Positions 23,377-58,916 of a stretch of 64,000 nt of DNA are shown here, piece by piece. Numbering within the stretch: position 1 is the first letter of the stretch; each line of letters starts with the position of its first letter. Made by a program: the position numbers and the translations under genes. The stretch lies in the sequence record NC_031010.1. One strand, given 5' to 3'. The notes beneath the pieces are model-generated. The model did not search any database. It was not told the DNA's origin and saw nothing but the letters and a program-made list of their open reading frames with translations.

Positions 23377-25557
23377 ATGCAAAGGTTCAATATATTTCGT
23401 GACCAGAATATCGCACTGGCGAAGTCGTTGATTTTCAAATCCGACATCATCGCCCAGCAGATGAATCTGGCTATTACAGAGAATGGCGGCACGGTCTTAA
23501 GCGACCGTTTCACATGGCGTTATTACCAACACCTTGCAGGTATTCGTCATGAAACAGACAAGCCGTTGTTAATAAGGTCACTGGATACGAAAAAGGACAT
23601 CGAGTTAACGCCGGCTAACATGGCGTTACATAAGAAAACCTCGAATGCTTATCGGGGTGACCCTGACACGTATATCGATGGTTTGATTGGCACCTACCCG
23701 GACTACGCTGTGTATATTCGTGGGGTGTTTAATCCCGTTCCTCTTTCTGTGTCGGTGCCTGCACGCGAATGCAGTATCCTTTATTACAACAAGTCATTGG
23801 TGGAGCCGCAAGAAACCTCGCTTATCACCCGAATGGAAGAATGGATTTATGCCGTTCACGTTCGTTGGATGGCCGAAGGGTGGCGGGTACACAATGATGC
23901 TTTTGTGCTGGCCTTTTACCTGAAACTGTTCCCACGCTTAGGGGCGGAGTTAATGGACCGGCGGTTGGAGAAAATCCACACCGTTGAAACCCACTCATTC
24001 CACGTCACCGAGTTCTTGGCCTCGCATCAGGAGCTGCACGAGTTTGTGCCCTACCTGACGAACAAGATGAAGTTTACGTTGTATCGCAACATCCGCTTCT
24101 GGGAACGCAACTCCGGGAAAAGCACCATCTTTGATTGGATGGTCGATACCCTGTTCACTGGCTGGTCAATGCCTGCGGTGTCCTACACGGTGAGTCAGAA
24201 GATTCACGACCCTACCACAGGTAGTGACGATGATGTAAACCCACTTCCGATCGCCTATTCGAAGTCACTGAACTACGAAGAGCGTGACTCCGGCCGTGAC
24301 TTGAATCTGTTGTCCACGAACGATGTGATTCAGAAAGAGTACGGGCTGGCGTATGACAACGCCGAGTACCAGCAGGAGTACCAAGACGACCTCGACAGCC
24401 GTTTAGGTCTCACGCTGTATGCCGCTCAGCCAACCAAGCTCGTGGAAGTGACCTCGATTGACCCGGAAGCTATCGAACGCTGGGAGTTCACGCACCTGCT
24501 GTTCAACGAATGGCTGCACTATACCGCCCGTGGCACGTACAACATCATGCACGAGGTGTTGAACCCGACCACCGGGGACACCATCAAAATCTCCACTAAA
24601 GAACTGCTGGCCTTGTATCTGTACGCTGGCTTCAAAGGCTTTAGCGGGGTGGCACTGGAGAAGATTCCTGACTTCAATGCCATGGGGGTGCTGATTAAGC
24701 GCTGGGTGTCGGTCGAGGAGATGCACAACTACCTTATCCCAAGCTGGCCCGGTCGTTACGATCGCATGGTTTCTTACTTCGCAGACACACACTACGAGCA
24801 ACTCACGCCAATTGAGAATGCCGAAGAGATGTATTCTGTGGCACAGACCATCATGCAGAACAAACGCCGCCGTTGGGTCTTTGCCGGTAACCGCAAAGTC
24901 TTGACGGAGAATGCTGCCGGTAAGCTGTTGTTCCAATACTTCTACCGCGACTACAAGTGTCCCCTGAATCTGAACTACAAGTCTTACGACGAGTTCTTCA
25001 AGATTTACAATATCGACTATACGTTGATATCACAGGAGACATGGCAGGACATCGCGAAGGACGCCTTCAACCTCGGTACCGCGTTTGAATCCAGTGCGAG
25101 TATTTCGCAGGCTGAAATCCAACGGGCCATGGTGAAACTGATATCGAAGCTTGCCTCCTATACCGTGCACTTTGCGGCGAGGATGTCAAGTGATACCTTC
25201 GACGTCACCGACCCTATCACCCCGCTGATTGATGACATGTTACTGGCCGGCTCCGGTACGATTGATGTTGACCATACCCCGGCAACCGTTGTCAGTGTGA
25301 AGTCGAAGTCCCGTGCACACTGCGACACCGTGCTGGATGTGACCCCGTCAATCAAGACGTCTGTGCCAACGCGTATTCGTGCCACGATGAACGTGTTCAT
25401 GGGCATTCAGGTCTCTACGAAGTCCAGCATCCGTGTCAACATCGAACAGCCACCGCTGGAGGTGACCGATGCTGAGTGGGAAAGCGGCGAGAAGACACTG
25501 ACCCGTCGTGTCCGCCATCGTGACCTGCCCGGATTCACCACCGACAACTTAGAGTGA
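23377..25557 (+). CDS. virion structural protein, probable baseplate wedge (726 aa)
   Basis: WRYYQHLAGIRHETD, IRSLDT, IHTVETHSFHVTEFLASH and LYRNIRF motifs recalled from phiKZ-like baseplate proteins. Confidence 0.65.
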   Translation: MQRFNIFRDQNIALAKSLIFKSDIIAQQMNLAITENGGTVLSDRFTWRYYQHLAGIRHETDKPLLIRSLDTKKDIELTPANMALHKKTSNAYRGDPDTYIDGLIGTYPDYAVYIRGVFNPVPLSVSVPARECSILYYNKSLVEPQETSLITRMEEWIYAVHVRWMAEGWRVHNDAFVLAFYLKLFPRLGAELMDRRLEKIHTVETHSFHVTEFLASHQELHEFVPYLTNKMKFTLYRNIRFWERNSGKSTIFDWMVDTLFTGWSMPAVSYTVSQKIHDPTTGSDDDVNPLPIAYSKSLNYEERDSGRDLNLLSTNDVIQKEYGLAYDNAEYQQEYQDDLDSRLGLTLYAAQPTKLVEVTSIDPEAIERWEFTHLLFNEWLHYTARGTYNIMHEVLNPTTGDTIKISTKELLALYLYAGFKGFSGVALEKIPDFNAMGVLIKRWVSVEEMHNYLIPSWPGRYDRMVSYFADTHYEQLTPIENAEEMYSVAQTIMQNKRRRWVFAGNRKVLTENAAGKLLFQYFYRDYKCPLNLNYKSYDEFFKIYNIDYTLISQETWQDIAKDAFNLGTAFESSASISQAEIQRAMVKLISKLASYTVHFAARMSSDTFDVTDPITPLIDDMLLAGSGTIDVDHTPATVVSVKSKSRAHCDTVLDVTPSIKTSVPTRIRATMNVFMGIQVSTKSSIRVNIEQPPLEVTDAEWESGEKTLTRRVRHRDLPGFTTDNLE

Positions 25558-49785: not shown

Positions 49786-49817
49786 GCTAGCCTCTGGGGC
49801 TAGCTTTCTTCTTTTTA
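49786..49817 (+). terminator. intrinsic terminator
   Basis: GCTAGCC/GGCTAGC plus T tract. Confidence 0.75.
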
Positions 49818-49882: not shown

Positions 49883-50506
49883 ATGGCAACCCCAAAGAAA
49901 CGTAATAAAAAGTACAACCGTGTGAAGTCCATGGACAACATCGCACTCAGCGCTGCACAGAACGCACTGAACCGTATCGCCTTCGTGGGCAGCTCTATCC
50001 GACCGCTTGCCCCTTATGGCGGGCGGTCTTTTCAATTAACATCAACCGGCAACATGCGTATCGCGGTGGCTGAGATTCTGACCTCGTCGCTGTTCGAAGA
50101 AGCACGGGATTGGCGGGCGTGGATTCTGCATCTGTATCAGGACGGTGAGGCGATTACTGCTGAGAGCATGCGCTTGCTGCTGCCGGAGTACACGCTGGCG
50201 GACTTCACCGAGCACGCTGACTTCCTTATCGAACAAACCCGCGATAAAGAACAGGTGCACTACGGCTATGCCATCTTTGCCTCCCCGACCGACAAGTTCG
50301 ATTTGGACGCCATGGATGAGGGACTCACGGAGAACTTCATGCACTCCGGTATCCTCGACAAGTCTCAGCACTTAACGCCTGAAGAGCACAAGGTGGATAA
50401 AGCTTTGATGCTGGCAAAGATTGTGGGTTATCAGACCAAGTTTGATGTCACCCGCAAACACAAAGTGGAGATGCCTGAAACCTACGTGAAAACCGGGGAG
50501 GAGTAA
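49883..50506 (+). CDS. hypothetical protein with basic N-terminus (207 aa)
   Basis: GTAAGGAG SD; MATPKKRNKKYN. Confidence 0.7.
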   Translation: MATPKKRNKKYNRVKSMDNIALSAAQNALNRIAFVGSSIRPLAPYGGRSFQLTSTGNMRIAVAEILTSSLFEEARDWRAWILHLYQDGEAITAESMRLLLPEYTLADFTEHADFLIEQTRDKEQVHYGYAIFASPTDKFDLDAMDEGLTENFMHSGILDKSQHLTPEEHKVDKALMLAKIVGYQTKFDVTRKHKVEMPETYVKTGEE

Positions 50507-50808
50507 TGGCGAACGCACGCGGATTATTGCGAGGGCCGAAATTCAGTGGACGCCACCAAACGATCATTGAAGAGGCCAAGACCCTGTTAGTATTCGCGAA
50601 AGACTGCGATGTGATTAAGAAAGTCGTGTTAGGTAAAATCAAACCTACGGGCGGTAAAGCCTCGGGATTGAAGTTTAAGTTAATGGAAACCTCGGTTGCG
50701 GTCGAGGTTATTTCACCCCGTCAATGGCAAGTCCTCTACTTTATCGGCAACCCGCCTGAAGTATTGGAAGTATTACAACACAATTACCCACAAGGATTAA
50801 TCTCATGA
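50506..50808 (+). CDS. DUF2103-like protein
   Basis: KFSGRHQTIIE...VVLGKI...Q.LY pattern recalls DUF2103. Confidence 0.45.
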   Translation: MANARGLLRGPKFSGRHQTIIEEAKTLLVFAKDCDVIKKVVLGKIKPTGGKASGLKFKLMETSVAVEVISPRQWQVLYFIGNPPEVLEVLQHNYPQGLIS

Positions 50809-51236
50809 AAATCAAAGTAATCAAAACGGAAGAAGTAAAACACATTGCCAATGGTATTCTGTTGGAGCGCCCACTGTCCGACTTCGCTAATCCTGACGAT
50901 CTTCAATCCGCGTTCCGTCGTCTGGTGCGGGGGCTGCTCTACTGCGAAAAAGGTGTGCCGGATACCTCTGGCATGAACGCCTTTGATGCACTGTTTCGTG
51001 TGAAAACCATCGAGCCCGACAGCGTCTGCGGTTCCATCGTTGACGCTGCAATTGACGTGGTGGATAACAAAGTTGTGGTGCGGGGCACCTTTGTCCCGGC
51101 GGGTCCATTAAAAGAGCTGGCGAAGGCTGCGATGGATATCCTCGATGAGCTGCCGCTGGTTCCGCGCTACGTGCTGGACTACGACGGCAAAATCGTATCG
51201 ATTGAGACGTGGGACCTGCTGGAACTGCAGGGATGA
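50805..51236 (+). CDS. prohead-protease-fold paralog, apparently catalytically dead (143 aa)
   Basis: GLLYCEKGVP, IEPDSVCGSI, GTFVPAGP, LVPR and IETWD follow the motif order of phiKZ gp175-type proteases, but GHP reads GVP and FSIR reads LVPR. Confidence 0.55.
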   Translation: MKIKVIKTEEVKHIANGILLERPLSDFANPDDLQSAFRRLVRGLLYCEKGVPDTSGMNAFDALFRVKTIEPDSVCGSIVDAAIDVVDNKVVVRGTFVPAGPLKELAKAAMDILDELPLVPRYVLDYDGKIVSIETWDLLELQG

Positions 51237-51436
51237 ATCCGCTTCAAATCTGGGGCGTAGTTGTCTACGCCATCTTCTCCTTTGTGATGGCGCTCGCATT
51301 GATGTCGCTTGCGCCACGCTATAAGCCGGGAAGATTACTCCCGATTGTTCTCTTCTACCTCGCCGTGATTGCGGTATTAACCGCCGGCGGGTATCTTTTT
51401 GGTTGGTATGTTTTAAGTGGATTAAAGGTGGATTAA
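51233..51436 (+). CDS. small 2-TM membrane protein (67 aa)
   Basis: ATGA and TAATG couplings; two hydrophobic helices. Confidence 0.7.
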   Translation: MNPLQIWGVVVYAIFSFVMALALMSLAPRYKPGRLLPIVLFYLAVIAVLTAGGYLFGWYVLSGLKVD

Positions 51437-52422
51437 TGCCGACGTATATTGCATTAACTGGCGGGTTGGATTCAACGTGGTGTTTGGTCAACGGTAAGAA
51501 GGCTGGAAACAGTCTGGAGCCTGTGGTGTTTAACATGGGCAACGGCATCAACGCGGTTATCATTGAGTATCTGTTGGGTCGTGAAATGGTACGTCGTCTC
51601 TGGAAGGATAAAAAAGGTGACGTGATGCCCCACCATGCGTGGGGTAAGCAAAAACTCGGCGGGTACATTTTCACTAACAACAATACGCCGACCATGCGCA
51701 TGATTCAACAGGGGCGGGTGGTCAATGGTCTGGCACGGGTTGCCTGCGATGATAGCCGTATACGTGACCCGATTCATTGTATCGTTGGCTGGCATCGTGA
51801 TGACGCGTTTGAGAACAACGGTGAGTACGGTGATTGGTCACTGGACGACTACAGTAAACTCAAGCAGTTGTTTGAATTGCAATGCTACTTTGCAGACACG
51901 GGTCGCCGTATTCAGCCGCTGGGCACCCCGGCTTGGGATAAGCCGAAGATTGACATGTGGAATGAGCTACCGGCCGACATCCGTCCGCTGGTGACTGTTC
52001 ACTGGCATAACCCGCTAAACATTTACTATTCTGACAAACGCAAAGAGCTGCTGATTTGCACCCAACCAAGATATTTCTCGCACAAGGTTAACGAGTATAT
52101 TGCGCTGGGTATTGACCCAACAGCCGCGTGGATATTCAAAGAAGATGAAAACCTCCTGCGTGAACTTTCTGCCCCGCTGTTTAAAGAGGATGTGTTACCG
52201 ATGGCCATTAAACACATGCTGAGTGTGGTGCCACCGGGCTCTGTCACGAATATGGAAAAAGTCCACATCGATGACAGCATCACTATTAATCAAACCTATT
52301 CGCATAGCCGCTGGAGTGTCGAAGGTGAATCAATCTTACAAGAGTTTAAAGAAGACTTTGAAGAGACTCATTACGCTGCTCTTCAAAAAGAAAAAGCCGG
52401 AACAGCCGAAGCGGACGCTTGA
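51436..52422 (+). CDS. QueC-like PP-loop (adenine nucleotide alpha-hydrolase) protein
   Basis: IALTGGLDST PP-loop and PAWDKPKIDMW (QueC P.x.K.EI equivalent); no C-terminal Zn-binding Cys cluster. Confidence 0.65.
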   Translation: MPTYIALTGGLDSTWCLVNGKKAGNSLEPVVFNMGNGINAVIIEYLLGREMVRRLWKDKKGDVMPHHAWGKQKLGGYIFTNNNTPTMRMIQQGRVVNGLARVACDDSRIRDPIHCIVGWHRDDAFENNGEYGDWSLDDYSKLKQLFELQCYFADTGRRIQPLGTPAWDKPKIDMWNELPADIRPLVTVHWHNPLNIYYSDKRKELLICTQPRYFSHKVNEYIALGIDPTAAWIFKEDENLLRELSAPLFKEDVLPMAIKHMLSVVPPGSVTNMEKVHIDDSITINQTYSHSRWSVEGESILQEFKEDFEETHYAALQKEKAGTAEADA

Positions 52423-52858
52423 CGACATCGTTCGTGAGTTGTTTGATTCGGAAGACCGGGATATCCCGGCTTTTGCCTCGGCCATGGGGATGTCGGTACC
52501 TGACCTGTACTTCGCCGTGAAAGACCCTTATCTGCGTGGTAACATCAAAGGCTTTGCAGGACAGGAAGCCAAGGTCATCATTAACGAACGGAACGATCGC
52601 CTCATCTTTGGTCGCAATGCCGTCCTCATCAGCATGCCTGATCGGGGCAACTTGCGTTTCGAGAACCTCGACGAGGGGATTGACCACCTTCGTCGCATGG
52701 CAAAACCGGATACGTTGCTTAAGATGTTCCCGCATGACATCAAAGAGCACACTGTGATGTTCTCGCTGACTGATGTGAAGGGCGACGCGGCTTTGGGCGT
52801 AATCTCGCAGCTCTCTAAAGCGCAGTTCGAGAAATTACTGGAAAGGTTCAAGGAGTAG
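52358..52858 (+). CDS. protein with HTH-like N-terminus
   Basis: Probable TTG start (MKRLITLLFKK); IPAFASAMGMSVPDLY. Start uncertain. Confidence 0.55.
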   Translation: MKRLITLLFKKKKPEQPKRTLDDIVRELFDSEDRDIPAFASAMGMSVPDLYFAVKDPYLRGNIKGFAGQEAKVIINERNDRLIFGRNAVLISMPDRGNLRFENLDEGIDHLRRMAKPDTLLKMFPHDIKEHTVMFSLTDVKGDAALGVISQLSKAQFEKLLERFKE

Positions 52859-52860
52859 CA

Positions 52861-54603
52861 ATGAAGATAATGGTGAACTTGCCGGAGATGACGCCATCGG
52901 ACTTTGTGGCATTGTTTGATAAGCACGTTTACGGGCAGGAACAAGCCAAGAAGATGCTGGCCATTGCCCTGCGTAACCGCTACCGCACCTCGCTCTTACT
53001 CGGGCAAGACCGCTTTAGCGTGAACAAGCAGAACGTGTTATTGCATGGCCCGACGGGTACCGGTAAAACGGCCCTGATTCGTGTGTTGCGCAAAGACCTC
53101 GAATTGCCGGTGCTGGAGTTCGACATGACCTCCTTTACTGAGTCGGGCTACGTCGGGCGTAGCATCGAAGAGATTGGCAAGGAGCTGAGGGAGCTGACCA
53201 AAGGCCTGAAGATTCCGAACTGGTATCTGGAAGCGCACGGTCAGCCCATTAACAAAGAGCCGGAAAGGAAGTACACCCGGGCGGAGTTAGAGGAACTGCA
53301 AAGGCAGGAGCTGCGCAACGACATGCAGGAGCGGGACGAACACCGTAAGCGTTTCAATGAAGCGTACAACGCCGCCTTGGACGAACTCAAGGCGTCGGGT
53401 GTGCTGGATATCGAAAAGCACGGTACGTACCTCAGCGTCTACTATTACCGCTGCCTGTTGTTAGGGCTTTACCGCTCTAACCACATTGAGGATGTATCGG
53501 GGCTGCAAGAACTCACCACGCTTAATATCGATGGTCTGGATTTCGGTGCTGTGTTTAAGGATACGGCCCGTTTGAAAGAGTTGTCCGATCTGGAGAACAG
53601 TGATGAAGAGCTCAGCGAAATGGGTGAGGCAGAACTCGAAGCGGAAGTGGCAGCCATCATGGCGCGGTTACTCAGGACAATGGGTCCAATTGAGTCTGAG
53701 TTTATTGAGCTGGGTCGTCGTTACATGAACAGCTATCCGTCCATGGCAACGGCCCCTCACGAAACGTGGGCACAGTTCGCTGACCAGTTTGAGGAAAGTG
53801 ATGATGCGCTGCGACCCATCGGGTTCAAAGCGATCCGTGTGGAAGACCCTGAACTGCACGCCCTGACCTTGTTGCATAGCGACATTGAGCTTGCAGAGAA
53901 ACAGCTCACCACCTGTGACGATTTTTCACACTACGTTGACGACGACCTCTGGGTGCTGCCGAAGTTTGAGCAGTTAAGTAAGGAAGCCATTGAAGCGCAA
54001 GAAAAGAGCGACAGCCCGAAACGGCGTATCGATCCTAAGTCGTTTGTGGAGAACTTCGCGGTGGTATTCTTAGATGAGATTGACAAACTCATTGAAGAAG
54101 ACACCACCCGAACCCACGTCTCGCGTTCTGGGGTACAGCGCAGTTTATTGAAGATGGTCGAAGGCGGAACCTACCACGGTATCGACACCACAAATATCTT
54201 GTTCGTGGCCGCGGGCGCGTTTGCCATTTCTCCTATCAGTAAACTGATGCCAGAGCTGCAAGGTCGTTTCCCACTACGGGGCCGGCTGAACGCACTGGAC
54301 GCCGATGCGTTTGTGCACATCTGTAAGATGACGGGCAGCGAGTTCCAAGGTCACATCGCGCTGATGCGTACTGAGAACGTCCAAGTCAAATACGACATGG
54401 ACACGTATCAGGTGATTGCAGAACGCACGCTTGCCCAAAACATGGTGGACAATCTCGGTGCCCGACGTCTGGGTGCGGTGATTAATGCCATCTTCCAACC
54501 TGCTATGTACGAGCCGGAGAAATACCGTCAAAACGGTTTTGATATCCGCGGTGAAACTTTACGAGCCATGAGTAAACCCAATGATGGAAACCAAAAGCAT
54601 TAG
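52861..54603 (+). CDS. hslU: HslU-like AAA+ ATPase with enlarged I-domain
   Basis: GQEQAK..AIALRNR, GPTGTGKT, GYVG, FLDEIDK, GVQRSLL, PELQGR and NLGARRL motifs. Confidence 0.92.
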   Translation: MKIMVNLPEMTPSDFVALFDKHVYGQEQAKKMLAIALRNRYRTSLLLGQDRFSVNKQNVLLHGPTGTGKTALIRVLRKDLELPVLEFDMTSFTESGYVGRSIEEIGKELRELTKGLKIPNWYLEAHGQPINKEPERKYTRAELEELQRQELRNDMQERDEHRKRFNEAYNAALDELKASGVLDIEKHGTYLSVYYYRCLLLGLYRSNHIEDVSGLQELTTLNIDGLDFGAVFKDTARLKELSDLENSDEELSEMGEAELEAEVAAIMARLLRTMGPIESEFIELGRRYMNSYPSMATAPHETWAQFADQFEESDDALRPIGFKAIRVEDPELHALTLLHSDIELAEKQLTTCDDFSHYVDDDLWVLPKFEQLSKEAIEAQEKSDSPKRRIDPKSFVENFAVVFLDEIDKLIEEDTTRTHVSRSGVQRSLLKMVEGGTYHGIDTTNILFVAAGAFAISPISKLMPELQGRFPLRGRLNALDADAFVHICKMTGSEFQGHIALMRTENVQVKYDMDTYQVIAERTLAQNMVDNLGARRLGAVINAIFQPAMYEPEKYRQNGFDIRGETLRAMSKPNDGNQKH

Positions 54604-54907
54604 TCAGGAAGAAGCTGTAATCGAGTTGCAAAGCAACTTCGACAGACTGAAGGAGCAGGCTAAGGATGGACACTCTCCGCTGTATCTCGTATACACAGGT
54701 GACGTGGGGGCCGTCGTCCATCCCAAGACGTGGGTAATGCGTGACGTGCTTGGCCAGCGGACGATTCTCGGCAAATCGATTGCCATGGTGCCAGCGCCCG
54801 AAGAACGGACGTTGTACATCTTGGAATACGAGACAGGGGCGAAGTTGGGTGAGATTAGCAACCCGCCTTTAGACCTGCTCAATGAACTCACCGGGCTTTC
54901 AACGTGA
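54581..54907 (+). CDS. hypothetical protein (108 aa)
   Basis: Overlapping ORF in the operon. Confidence 0.6.
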   Translation: MMETKSISQEEAVIELQSNFDRLKEQAKDGHSPLYLVYTGDVGAVVHPKTWVMRDVLGQRTILGKSIAMVPAPEERTLYILEYETGAKLGEISNPPLDLLNELTGLST

Positions 54908-54933: not shown

Positions 54934-55314
54934 ATGTCAGCCTTACGAGTATGGACAATTCAGATGGGCCAGTGGCGTAAAGCCGTGGAGAAAGACATAC
55001 CCCTCCTGAATATCACTATCAAGTCCGGTGAAGCTATCTTTGCACCGGACTGGGATTTCTTGATGACGTATAAAGATTCCGCCAAAACCCCCGAGGATGA
55101 ACGCATCTACACTCGGGCCTATGCCGCGAAGATTAACCGTAAGCTCAAAGAATTCCCGAATAAGTTTTCAGATATATTTAATAACAGTGAGATAGCCTTA
55201 GCCTGTTATTGTCCGGACGGTGAATTCTGTCATCGGCATTTGTTTGTCAAAGTCTTACAACAGCTCGGTAAGCAACTCGGTAGAGAAGTTATTTACATGG
55301 GCGAAATCACTTAA
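54934..55314 (+). CDS. DUF488-like protein
   Basis: AGGAG SD; FAPDWDFL and LACYCPDGEFCHRHL motifs. Confidence 0.6.
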   Translation: MSALRVWTIQMGQWRKAVEKDIPLLNITIKSGEAIFAPDWDFLMTYKDSAKTPEDERIYTRAYAAKINRKLKEFPNKFSDIFNNSEIALACYCPDGEFCHRHLFVKVLQQLGKQLGREVIYMGEIT

Positions 55315-57324: not shown

Positions 57325-57663
57325 ATGCTCGGTTGGTTCCGCCGTTATAAGCAGTTAAAGGAAGAGCACGCCGAGTTAACCGAGACCACGGAGTTTCAGG
57401 CTCAACTGATCGATGTGCTTCGTGAGCAGGTAAAAGCAGCCACCGGTCTCTCGGACACGCAACGCGACACCATAAACCTGTTGCGCAAGAACCGTGACAT
57501 GAATGAGCGGACACTTGACTTGGTGTTAACCATACTCGCCACCGCAGTCTACGACCGCCGTGACCCGCTCGACGCCATCGGTCGGGTGTTTAGAGCGATG
57601 ACACCAAAAACCTGCGCACGGGTTGCAAAATTAATCATCACCGGAAGGAGTAATAAATGTTAA
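57325..57663 (+). CDS. coiled-coil protein (112 aa)
   Basis: GGAGGT SD. Confidence 0.7.
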   Translation: MLGWFRRYKQLKEEHAELTETTEFQAQLIDVLREQVKAATGLSDTQRDTINLLRKNRDMNERTLDLVLTILATAVYDRRDPLDAIGRVFRAMTPKTCARVAKLIITGRSNKC

Positions 57664-58916
57664 AACCACGTAAGACCCGTAAGAACCGTGCACAAATGAC
57701 GTTCCGCAATGATGGTACGGCAACGTACTATTCCCCGAACCGTAAACCGCTGAAGTTAAGCGAAGAGAGTTTCGCGACAATCGCCAAGCTTAGGTTTCGT
57801 AACCCAGCGAACATTTGGTACGGCATGCGTGCCATGCAAGCGCATATCGAACGACCTGAATACCCGTATCATGCATTACGGGCAATGACCAAGAAAGAAT
57901 GGAACTTCCATTGGCAATGGAAAGCCTTATCGCGCGCCGTACATGTTGACCAAGTGGAACAGTGTGCTCTTCGTGACGAAGTTAACCCACTGGACTGGTC
58001 TTGGCAGCCTGAGTTCTTGCAGAACATGGATTACCTCGCCCGCAAAGCGTCGCTGCTCCATCCCGTATTTGGTACTGACCCGGGTCGTCCCGAAGGTTCA
58101 GCGATGGCGATGGTACTTAAAGGTCGTCGTCCGGGAATGAGTACACTCTTTGAAAACGGTATTGGAGATTCCCCGCGCATCAGTCCATCTATGCGCAAAT
58201 CCGATATTGAATTGGGCATGGCAATGAAGCTGGGGCCAGAGGCAACCAAGAAGTTACTTGTGGAACGTCTCACTATCGCTGGTCCAAACGGTGAGCGTTA
58301 TTTCATTTCCAGTGAATCAGGCAGCGAGCGCGTCAATGATTCACTCAATGCGATGATAAAAGCGGAAGAGCACACACGCTTTAGCGTTCGTGAAGTGTCA
58401 CCTGAACGCGTTCTCCAGAAGCTGGATAACATGGGTCATGTCGGTGCATTGGACATCGAGCCGAATGGGAGACCTCCGCTCACCATGGCAAGAGAATACG
58501 CTATGGCAGGATCGTGGGGCACACCTAAGGACGACACCGAAGTCGAGCCATTCAACGGGGAAGTTAAAGGTGTGGAATTGAGAAAGTCTTCGGTTTCGTT
58601 AAACAATCCTGAGCTAGAAGACATCGACCCGTTCTCTGAAGAGTTGACCGTCGAACAAAAGGCAGCCATTCTCGAAGAAGCGAAAATCAACCCGATGTAT
58701 TTTTATCGGATTGTGAGACAGGCCATGAGCTCCGCATGGACAGATAGTCGTTTCCCGTTCTCGGAAGAAGACGTTAACAGCCTTAGAGCTTTGTACAGTC
58801 TCGCGAAAAAGAACGAGTATCACCCACAGCCCATCGATACTACCAAAAAGCATTATTTCTCACCTATCTCGCCAGATGAGTTAATCGCTGCTCCGAAGGC
58901 GGAGGATGACAAATAA
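57657..58916 (+). CDS. hypothetical protein with terminase-like motifs (419 aa)
   Basis: AAGGAGTAAT SD; VLKGRRPGMST and DIDPFSEELTVEQKAAILEEAKINPMYFYRIVR. Confidence 0.65.
   Translation: MLKPRKTRKNRAQMTFRNDGTATYYSPNRKPLKLSEESFATIAKLRFRNPANIWYGMRAMQAHIERPEYPYHALRAMTKKEWNFHWQWKALSRAVHVDQVEQCALRDEVNPLDWSWQPEFLQNMDYLARKASLLHPVFGTDPGRPEGSAMAMVLKGRRPGMSTLFENGIGDSPRISPSMRKSDIELGMAMKLGPEATKKLLVERLTIAGPNGERYFISSESGSERVNDSLNAMIKAEEHTRFSVREVSPERVLQKLDNMGHVGALDIEPNGRPPLTMAREYAMAGSWGTPKDDTEVEPFNGEVKGVELRKSSVSLNNPELEDIDPFSEELTVEQKAAILEEAKINPMYFYRIVRQAMSSAWTDSRFPFSEEDVNSLRALYSLAKKNEYHPQPIDTTKKHYFSPISPDELIAAPKAEDDK

Follow-up and report, generated by a model that had tools for sequence, protein, structure and literature searches.

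A Tail-less HslU-Like AAA+ ATPase of the Jumbo Phage Kwan: a Candidate Unfoldase Without an HslV Partner Gene

Introduction

In bacteria, the ATPase HslU docks on the peptidase HslV through a C-terminal motif that binds in grooves between the HslV subunits (PMC7468587). Here we ask what an HslU-like protein might do in a phage where both this motif and an HslV partner gene are missing. The protein in question, gp148, is an HslU-like AAA+ ATPase encoded in a 64-kb window (the whole stretch of DNA that was analyzed), which is identical base for base to positions 62001-126000 of NC_031010.1, the genome of Erwinia phage vB_EamM_Kwan. Kwan is a 246-kb jumbo phage of the species Wellingtonvirus wellington that infects Erwinia amylovora, the fire-blight bacterium. 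The open reading frame (ORF) lies on the plus strand at 52861-54603 of the window, begins with ATG and encodes 580 amino acids (aa) followed by a stop codon; its product is 100% identical to Kwan gp148 (NC_031010.1 114861-116603), deposited as 'putative heat shock protein; ATPase subunit HslU domain-containing protein'. Annotation of this gene and of the family to which it belongs thus predates our analysis, and one distant member, gp116 of phage RAY, has a published localization. Literature on HslU with jumbo phages or SPN3US yielded no study of the clade beyond genome notes and the RAY localization, and we found no paper describing the loss of the tail, the enlarged acidic insert, the inheritance independent of HslV-like genes or the linkage to the upstream gene gp147 reported below. 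A first-pass annotation of the window had proposed two roles, either a stand-alone unfoldase or remodeler with new specificity or a poison subunit of the host HslUV. Our analysis favors the former, namely that gp148 is probably a protease-independent unfoldase or remodeler derived from HslU.

Gp148 Carries an Intact HslU-Type Motor

In the family scans, TIGR00390 (HslU) was the top family for gp148 with 222.3 bits in two stretches, below its equivalog cut-off of 362.45 bits. ClpX came second (TIGR00382 / NF003745), its 127-142 bits also falling below the cut-offs of 359-371 bits, and the Pfam scan returned generic AAA and AAA_2 domains only. The match to phrog_4339 was full length (E 1.1e-168, residues 9-570 against profile positions 4-529 of 552). 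By alignment the closest solved structure was E. coli HslU (E 2e-50), with gp148 residues 8-111 aligned to residues 2-105 and residues 387-553 to residues 238-411. An AlphaFold2 model built from a 60-sequence alignment, with a mean predicted local distance difference test score (pLDDT) of 91, found its best PDB matches in HslU/ClpY chains (E 1e-19) across both AAA sub-domains. Gp148 thus has the large and small AAA+ domain fold of bacterial HslU/ClpY (TIGR00390; PDB 1G4A, 1E94, 6PXK). Its N-terminal AAA+ part also aligns to PDB ClpX chains (E 1e-29), but only the first about 100 residues do so and the ClpX score is lower than that for HslU (142 vs 222 bits). ClpX is otherwise characterized by its IGF loop and zinc-binding N-domain.

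The elements needed by such a motor are retained, as they are in bacterial HslU. Residues 1-111 (52861-53193), which make up the N-terminal portion of the large AAA+ domain and are 43-45% identical to bacterial HslUs, contain the Walker A motif GPTGTGKT (G63-T70, 53047-53070, with K69) and the GYVG pore-1 loop (G96-Y97-V98-G99, 53146-53157). The PDB alignment and the motifs place the remainder of the large domain and the small domain in residues 391-570 (54031-54570), which carry the Walker B motif VVFLDEIDK (V401-K409, 54061-54087, with D405/E406), the arginine finger motif ELQGRFP (residues 465-471, 54253-54273, with R469) and the sensor-2 motif GARRL (residues 533-537, 54457-54471, with R535/R536). 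The Walker A, Walker B, arginine finger and sensor-2 positions are invariant over the 60 aligned sequences. Between Kwan and phage Wellington the gene shows 38 synonymous and 8 nonsynonymous differences, which corresponds to a ratio of nonsynonymous to synonymous rates (dN/dS) of 0.056 overall and 0.053 in the insert described below; these counts are small, although the direction is clear, and purifying selection on gp148 is strong. Given that the catalytic and pore elements are intact and under purifying selection, gp148 should form a ring that uses ATP to grip polypeptides and translocate them.

The same data bear on the idea that gp148 is an AAA+ ATPase of DNA-protein transactions, such as a loader or initiator, rather than a polypeptide translocase. 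This idea could draw on the label 'putative DnaA protein' given to its ortholog in phage pSal-SNUABM-04 (ORF121), on weak generic P-loop matches of gp148 to ORC/Cdc6 and RFC families, and on the nuclear position of RAY gp116 together with DNA (see below). Against 222 bits for HslU, no replication family reaches 35 bits; the polypeptide-gripping GYVG loop is kept, both AAA sub-domains have the fold of HslU/ClpY, and the strongly acidic insert disfavors direct DNA binding. We therefore consider a role as a DNA loader or initiator very improbable.

The HslV-Activating Tail Is Missing Throughout the Phage Clade

Bacterial HslUs end in a highly uniform motif, and D(L/V)(S/T)(R/K)(Y/F)IL was the terminus in 90/90 bacterial HslUs of the match list. 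This tail is missing in all 30 of the 30 phage-clade proteins, whose ends are unrelated to it and mostly polar or charged. Kwan gp148 ends in the polar ...AMSKPNDGNQKH, and about the last 20 residues of bacterial HslU, tail included, have no counterpart in it. Residues 571-580 (54571-54600) form a short polar C-terminus where bacterial HslU has the HslV-activating helix and tail, and it appears disordered, with pLDDT below 50 at residues 575-580. The absence of a conserved HslV-activating tail, as claimed in the first-pass annotation, is therefore a property of the whole clade, and it extends to phage-clade ATPases whose phages carry HslV-like genes.

Wellingtonvirus Genomes Lack an HslV-Like Peptidase Gene

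The first-pass annotation had also noted that no hslV gene adjoins gp148, and this proved true of the entire genome. Profiles for HslV (TIGR03692), the proteasome (PF00227) and ClpP (PF00574) had no match in the whole 246-kb Kwan genome, while control genomes, E. coli among them, were positive. The phage-specific family phrog_1040 ('peptidase HslV family') had no match in Kwan, Wellington or pEa_SNUABM_11, and was found by the same searches in pSal-SNUABM-04 (two genes), EarlPhillipIV and RAY. Four phage HslV-like sequences also served as seeds in an unfiltered HMMER search of all six-frame Kwan ORFs of at least 60 aa, and the best value was only E 0.29. Since all three Wellingtonvirus genomes (Kwan, Wellington and pEa_SNUABM_11) were negative, the absence of HslV-like genes extends, at profile sensitivity, to the genus. 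Given that gp148 has no tail and that the genus has no HslV-type gene, translocation by gp148 should end in release of the substrate and not in its degradation.

The Salmonella phage pSal-SNUABM-04 was described in its genome paper as having 'HslV' genes and no HslU (PMC7823757). Its ORF 1 and ORF 116 both start with M-T-T and match phrog_1040, and on these grounds we accepted them as HslV-like and used them as positive controls, although neither reaches PF00227 at E 0.01 or better. An HslU-like gene does exist in this phage: ORF121 (MT710307.1 3798-5531), the ortholog filed under the DnaA label, lies five genes downstream of the second HslV-like gene. Genes of phrog_1040 are present in phiEaH2, Asesino, SPAsTU, the SPN3US group and Machinavirus, which has two copies, one lying five genes upstream of the ATPase; in Derbicusvirus such a gene precedes the ATPase by about 2 kb, and in RAY a weak match is located elsewhere in the genome. 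The family is also present in Klebsiella, Proteus and Erwinia phages of about 42-49 kb (e.g., NC_071128.1, MG575421.1 and OL944604.1), which are not among the HslU-like tblastn matches, and thus this phage N-terminal nucleophile (Ntn) peptidase family has a life of its own. Since HslV-like genes occur without the ATPase in these phages and Wellingtonvirus has the ATPase without an HslV-like peptidase, the two genes are inherited independently. Moreover, because the phage ATPases are tail-less even where the peptidase is present, they cannot dock on it in the canonical way.

These results also weigh on the alternative that gp148 is the ATPase half of a two-part protease with non-canonical docking, whose partner would be the host HslV, the Kwan protein gp144 or a phage peptidase that was not recognized. 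Speaking for such a pairing are the HslV-like genes of most related genera, some of them within 2-3 kb of the ATPase, the presence in Kwan of gp144 four genes upstream as a short S80-type paralog, and the term 'HslUV-like protease' that the RAY authors used for gp116. Against it stand the absence of the tail even in phages with HslV-like genes, the lack of any HslV-like gene in Wellingtonvirus and the occurrence of each gene alone; furthermore, gp144 scores below the S80 cut-off and its 143 aa cover only part of the 229-position profile. On balance we regard a two-part protease as unlikely.

Gp144 itself (50805-51236, plus strand) is annotated as 'head maturation protease' and is related to the phiKZ-type S80 prohead protease only as a paralog of reduced length (phrog_7478, E 3e-37; Pfam S80, 22.3 bits against a cut-off of 23.4). 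Its counterpart in pSal-SNUABM-04 lies just downstream of the HslU-like gene. No S80/assemblin-fold protease is known to dock AAA+ rings.

An Enlarged Acidic Helical Insert Occupies the I-Domain Position

In bacterial HslU the I-domain takes part in substrate recognition and can plug the channel (PMC7468587, PMC7849044). The PDB alignment places both motor segments of gp148, and K69 and D405 thus correspond to K63 and D256 of E. coli HslU; the span between them, from the Walker A lysine to the Walker B aspartate, is 336 residues in gp148 versus 193 in E. coli, in agreement with the values first reported for this ORF. The additional length lies in an acidic all-helical region at the I-domain position (residues 112-390, 53194-54030), which is recognized by its length, model and charge. 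Measured between the anchors L109 and E397, the insert has 287 aa in Kwan; the 24 close phage homologs have a median of 300 aa, and the 31 bacterial HslUs one of 152 aa (range 136-208). The AlphaFold2 model of gp148 shows several long helices and no other secondary structure here, with pLDDT mostly above 90, and the composition of 58 D+E against 33 K+R gives the insert a net charge of -25, with the remainder of the protein at net 0. The acidic and helical character of the extra residues was thus borne out, and so was the length implied by the term 'doubled I-domain' in the first-pass annotation. A duplication in the literal sense was ruled out, since the two halves of the insert are dissimilar (blastp E 1.9; hhalign 0.1%).

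The insert is only 9-16% identical to the bacterial I-domains at the same site, and it is therefore about twice as long as its bacterial counterpart, far more acidic and not alignable with it. It shares the position of the I-domain between Walker A and Walker B, which does not imply homology to the I-domain itself. A search of the ESM Atlas for look-alikes of the insert gave none usable (template modeling score of 0.33 or below). Between phage genera the motor is 56-66% identical and the fast-evolving insert about 20%, while the net charge of the insert lies between -19 and -31 in 24/24 members of the clade of 570-586-aa proteins (bacterial median -4). It looks as if charge, rather than sequence, is the conserved property of the insert; the inserts of the Derbicus-type and RAY proteins are not strongly acidic. 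Because the I-domain recognizes substrates in bacterial HslU, the rebuilt insert would imply new substrate rules for gp148.

Gp148 Belongs to an Old Phage Lineage

Jumbo phages of Erwinia and Salmonella, as well as metagenomes, contain full-length phrog_4339 homologs with 41-82% identity to gp148. Derbicusvirus-type phages have a longer version of 720-740 aa, and the versions in RAY-type and Miami-type phages are more distant. The orthologs of Machinavirus and of Seoulvirus-type and SPN3US-type phages (among them pSal-SNUABM-04 ORF121 and Caitlin gp127) are 41-44% identical to gp148 over the full length and share its architecture, the loss of the tail, the acidic insert and mostly the same upstream gene of phrog_11712; unlike Kwan, these phages have one or two HslV-like genes and a different gene order around the cassette. 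The gene is present in at least five named genera (Wellingtonvirus, Machinavirus, Seoulvirus, Derbicusvirus and Agricanvirus) as well as in further lineages, and its frame is open in all relatives. In a maximum-likelihood tree of the motor domains only (271 columns, LG+G4, 1000 ultrafast bootstraps), the phage-type proteins, RAY gp116 among them, all formed one clade with 100% support, apart from the 31 sampled bacterial HslUs, and the 570-586-aa group and the Wellingtonvirus-type group within it had 99% support each.

The gp148 motor is about 40-45% identical to bacterial HslUs and no nearer to enterobacterial HslU than to the others; its match to E. coli HslU scores 175 bits and that to the best bacterial HslU 199 bits. 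We conclude that gp148 represents an old phage lineage and not a recent capture from the host. This speaks directly to the second role proposed in the first-pass annotation, in which gp148 would poison or compete with the host HslUV, either by entering mixed rings or by soaking up substrates, and would thereby shield phage proteins. An HslU architecture without the activating tail might indeed make a mixed ring defective, and the host order carries hslVU, with the E. coli control positive in our HslV search. We found no positive evidence for such a poison, though, and an old, monophyletic clade whose motor has diverged this far from bacterial HslUs is not what it would lead one to expect. An intact pore loop and catalytic parts under strong purifying selection would be unneeded in a mere poison, and the relative RAY gp116 is sequestered in the phage nucleus, away from the host HslV. 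Poisoning of the host protease is accordingly quite improbable.

The conservation data likewise answer the suggestion that gp148 is what remains of a captured hslU, now decaying and functionless. The missing tail and the missing partner gene could be read as steps of decay, but the frame is open in every relative, the catalytic motifs are invariant, dN/dS is low, at least five genera conserve the gene and its close relatives appear in sequencing runs from many studies, so that decay is effectively refuted.

Metagenomes of plant, phyllosphere, food and food-production origin, generated in more than 10 studies, contain near-identical relatives of the region 52358-54907 that share about half of the sampled 31-mers, and Wellingtonvirus-like phages seem to be common on plant material. 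Two RNA-labeled libraries hold contigs of relatives with 90-97% identity that span gp147, gp149 and the two motor parts of gp148; as DNA carry-over is possible, these contigs are no evidence of transcription.

Gp147 Is Linked to the HslU-Like Gene and Does Not Resemble HslV

Immediately upstream of gp148 lies gp147 (52358-52858, plus strand; phrog_11712), a gene for a protein of about 166 aa. In tblastn searches gp147 matched 16 phage records, and in 16/16 it either directly adjoins the HslU-like gene or runs into the beginning of it; profile scans add Caitlin, ChrisDB, pEa_SNUABM_29 and pEa_SNUABM_11 to the phages with this linkage. In pSal-SNUABM-04 the gene order is phrog_6965, phrog_11712, HslU-like, small gene, S80-like, two small genes, QueC-like and DUF488, whereas in Kwan and pEa_SNUABM_11 it is phrog_6965, small gene, S80-like, small gene, QueC-like, phrog_11712, HslU-like, one or two small genes and DUF488. 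Since the order differs in this manner, the two genes gp147 and gp148 have been relocated together. Not every phage shows the linkage, and other small upstream genes occupy the place in phage 1252 (SPN3US-type), Derbicusvirus and RAY (phrog_12322 in RAY).

In bacteria, hslV lies upstream of hslU. Given that gp147 has an hslV-like position and size, it was tested as a degenerate HslV, and this was ruled out: hhalign gave 0.9% to the HslV-like family against 84.8% for the positive control. In the model of gp147 (pLDDT 85), five short helices precede a small domain rich in beta structure, and a fold search of the PDB with it returned no Ntn-hydrolase match, the best hits being PH-like domains with a Z-score of 5.6, within noise. 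Gp147 is thus non-HslV by both profile and fold and is a candidate partner or adaptor; we hypothesize that it physically partners gp148.

The annotated start of gp147 is non-ATG in Kwan and overlaps the end of gp146 by 65 nucleotides (nt; 52358-52422). Metagenomic relatives carry ATG at this position and diverge just upstream of it, which supports the annotated start. On the other side, gp149 (54584-54907, plus strand; 107 aa) shares its first 20 nt with the end of gp148 and is found only in Kwan and Wellington. The flanking genes gp146 (51436-52422; phrog_8825, whose pEa_SNUABM_11 ortholog is weakly QueC-like) and gp150 (54964-55314) are adjacent in Machinavirus and are separated in Wellingtonvirus by the gp147-gp148-gp149 cassette. 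The label of gp150, 'GIY-YIG catalytic domain protein', looks wrong because Pfam places it in DUF488-N3a (E 1e-09). Farther upstream, two strong terminator-like hairpins on the plus strand (50001-50028 and 49786-49804, with 11 and 8 stem pairs and subsequent T-runs) fall at the start and in the interior of gp142 (phrog_6965). The 7-kb region holds 15 terminator-like elements against 7.9 expected. A scan for sigma-70 promoters and terminators carried no information in a phage that has its own RNA polymerases.

Cellular Setting and Proposed Mode of Action

Phage Wellington is listed as a chimallin-encoding, nucleus-forming phage (Prichard et al., 2023, PMC10299810). Chimallin was not found among the window ORFs tested, two large ones of which, both of unknown function, were compared with the PDB, giving one phiKZ gp128 homolog and one without a match; nucleus formation by Kwan therefore rests on the listing of Wellington in that study. 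The phiKZ gp128 homolog (23377-25557, plus strand; 726 aa, phrog_3222, E 1e-70) is annotated as 'unknown function' and corresponds to a virion structural protein with solved structures; it is an example of the phiKZ-type virion proteins that the window encodes. A 419-aa ORF at 57657-58916 on the plus strand, annotated 'putative terminase large subunit', has a weak partial terminase PHROG match (E 5.5e-06) in which no stretch passes alone.

In the same study, RAY gp116 fused to green fluorescent protein co-localized with viral DNA inside the phage nucleus, and the authors called it an accessory 'HslUV-like protease' whose function was unclear to them (PMC10299810). RAY resembles Kwan in infecting E. 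amylovora and in being of the jumbo chimallin-encoding type, and RAY gp116 falls in the same motor-domain clade as gp148 (ultrafast bootstrap 100) and is likewise tail-less. The two are about 31% identical over roughly 45% of the query (tblastn). Gp116 differs from gp148 in its GYYG pore loop, its shorter, non-acidic insert and the phrog_12322 gene upstream of it, and RAY, unlike Kwan, carries a weak HslV-like gene elsewhere in its genome.

Taken together, the intact motor, the tail-less clade, the absence of a peptidase gene in the genus and the low dN/dS make an HslU-derived, protease-independent unfoldase or remodeler with new specificity the best supported reading of gp148. The protein would descend from HslU and assemble as a hexamer into an active AAA+ ring that no longer feeds a peptidase in vivo. 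Hydrolysis of ATP would drive the GYVG pore loops, which would pull substrates through the central channel, and the enlarged acidic helical insert, possibly helped by gp147, would select these substrates at the entry face. The outcome would be unfolding, disassembly or remodeling without degradation. By analogy with RAY gp116, gp148 probably acts inside the phage nucleus.

Several considerations weigh against this interpretation. For every member of the 570-586-aa clade, unfoldase activity is something that we only infer, from the conserved motor. Most sister genera retain a phage HslV-like peptidase, and in Machinavirus and Derbicusvirus its gene lies just 2-3 kb upstream of the ATPase, so that a non-canonical pairing of ATPase and peptidase is possible there and may be ancestral. 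A partner whose fold is unrelated could escape sequence searches. Long-branch attraction could inflate the grouping of RAY in the tree, and the localization of RAY gp116 may not transfer to Kwan because of the low identity, the GYYG loop and the non-acidic insert.

A more specific, speculative version of the proposal is that gp148 and gp147 together make up a machine dedicated to unfolding without a protease, at work in the phage nucleus. Its conserved, strongly acidic entry-side domain would resemble nucleic acid and so lure and capture basic proteins that bind DNA, either to strip and recycle them from phage DNA or to handle proteins that cross the chimallin shell. We offer this as a doubtful, though concrete, elaboration of the unfoldase reading.

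Nucleus-forming jumbo phages construct a compartment bounded by protein, inside which proteins would be sorted, remodeled or turned over. Names such as 'heat shock protein', 'HslUV protease' and 'DnaA', under which these phage genes stand in databases, are misleading. The family to which gp148 belongs offers a natural experiment, in which HslU would work without HslV and the I-domain would be rebuilt for new substrates. As a conserved putative AAA+ unfoldase without protease coupling, one member of which is nuclear, it provides a concrete and testable candidate for protein remodeling in the phage nucleus.

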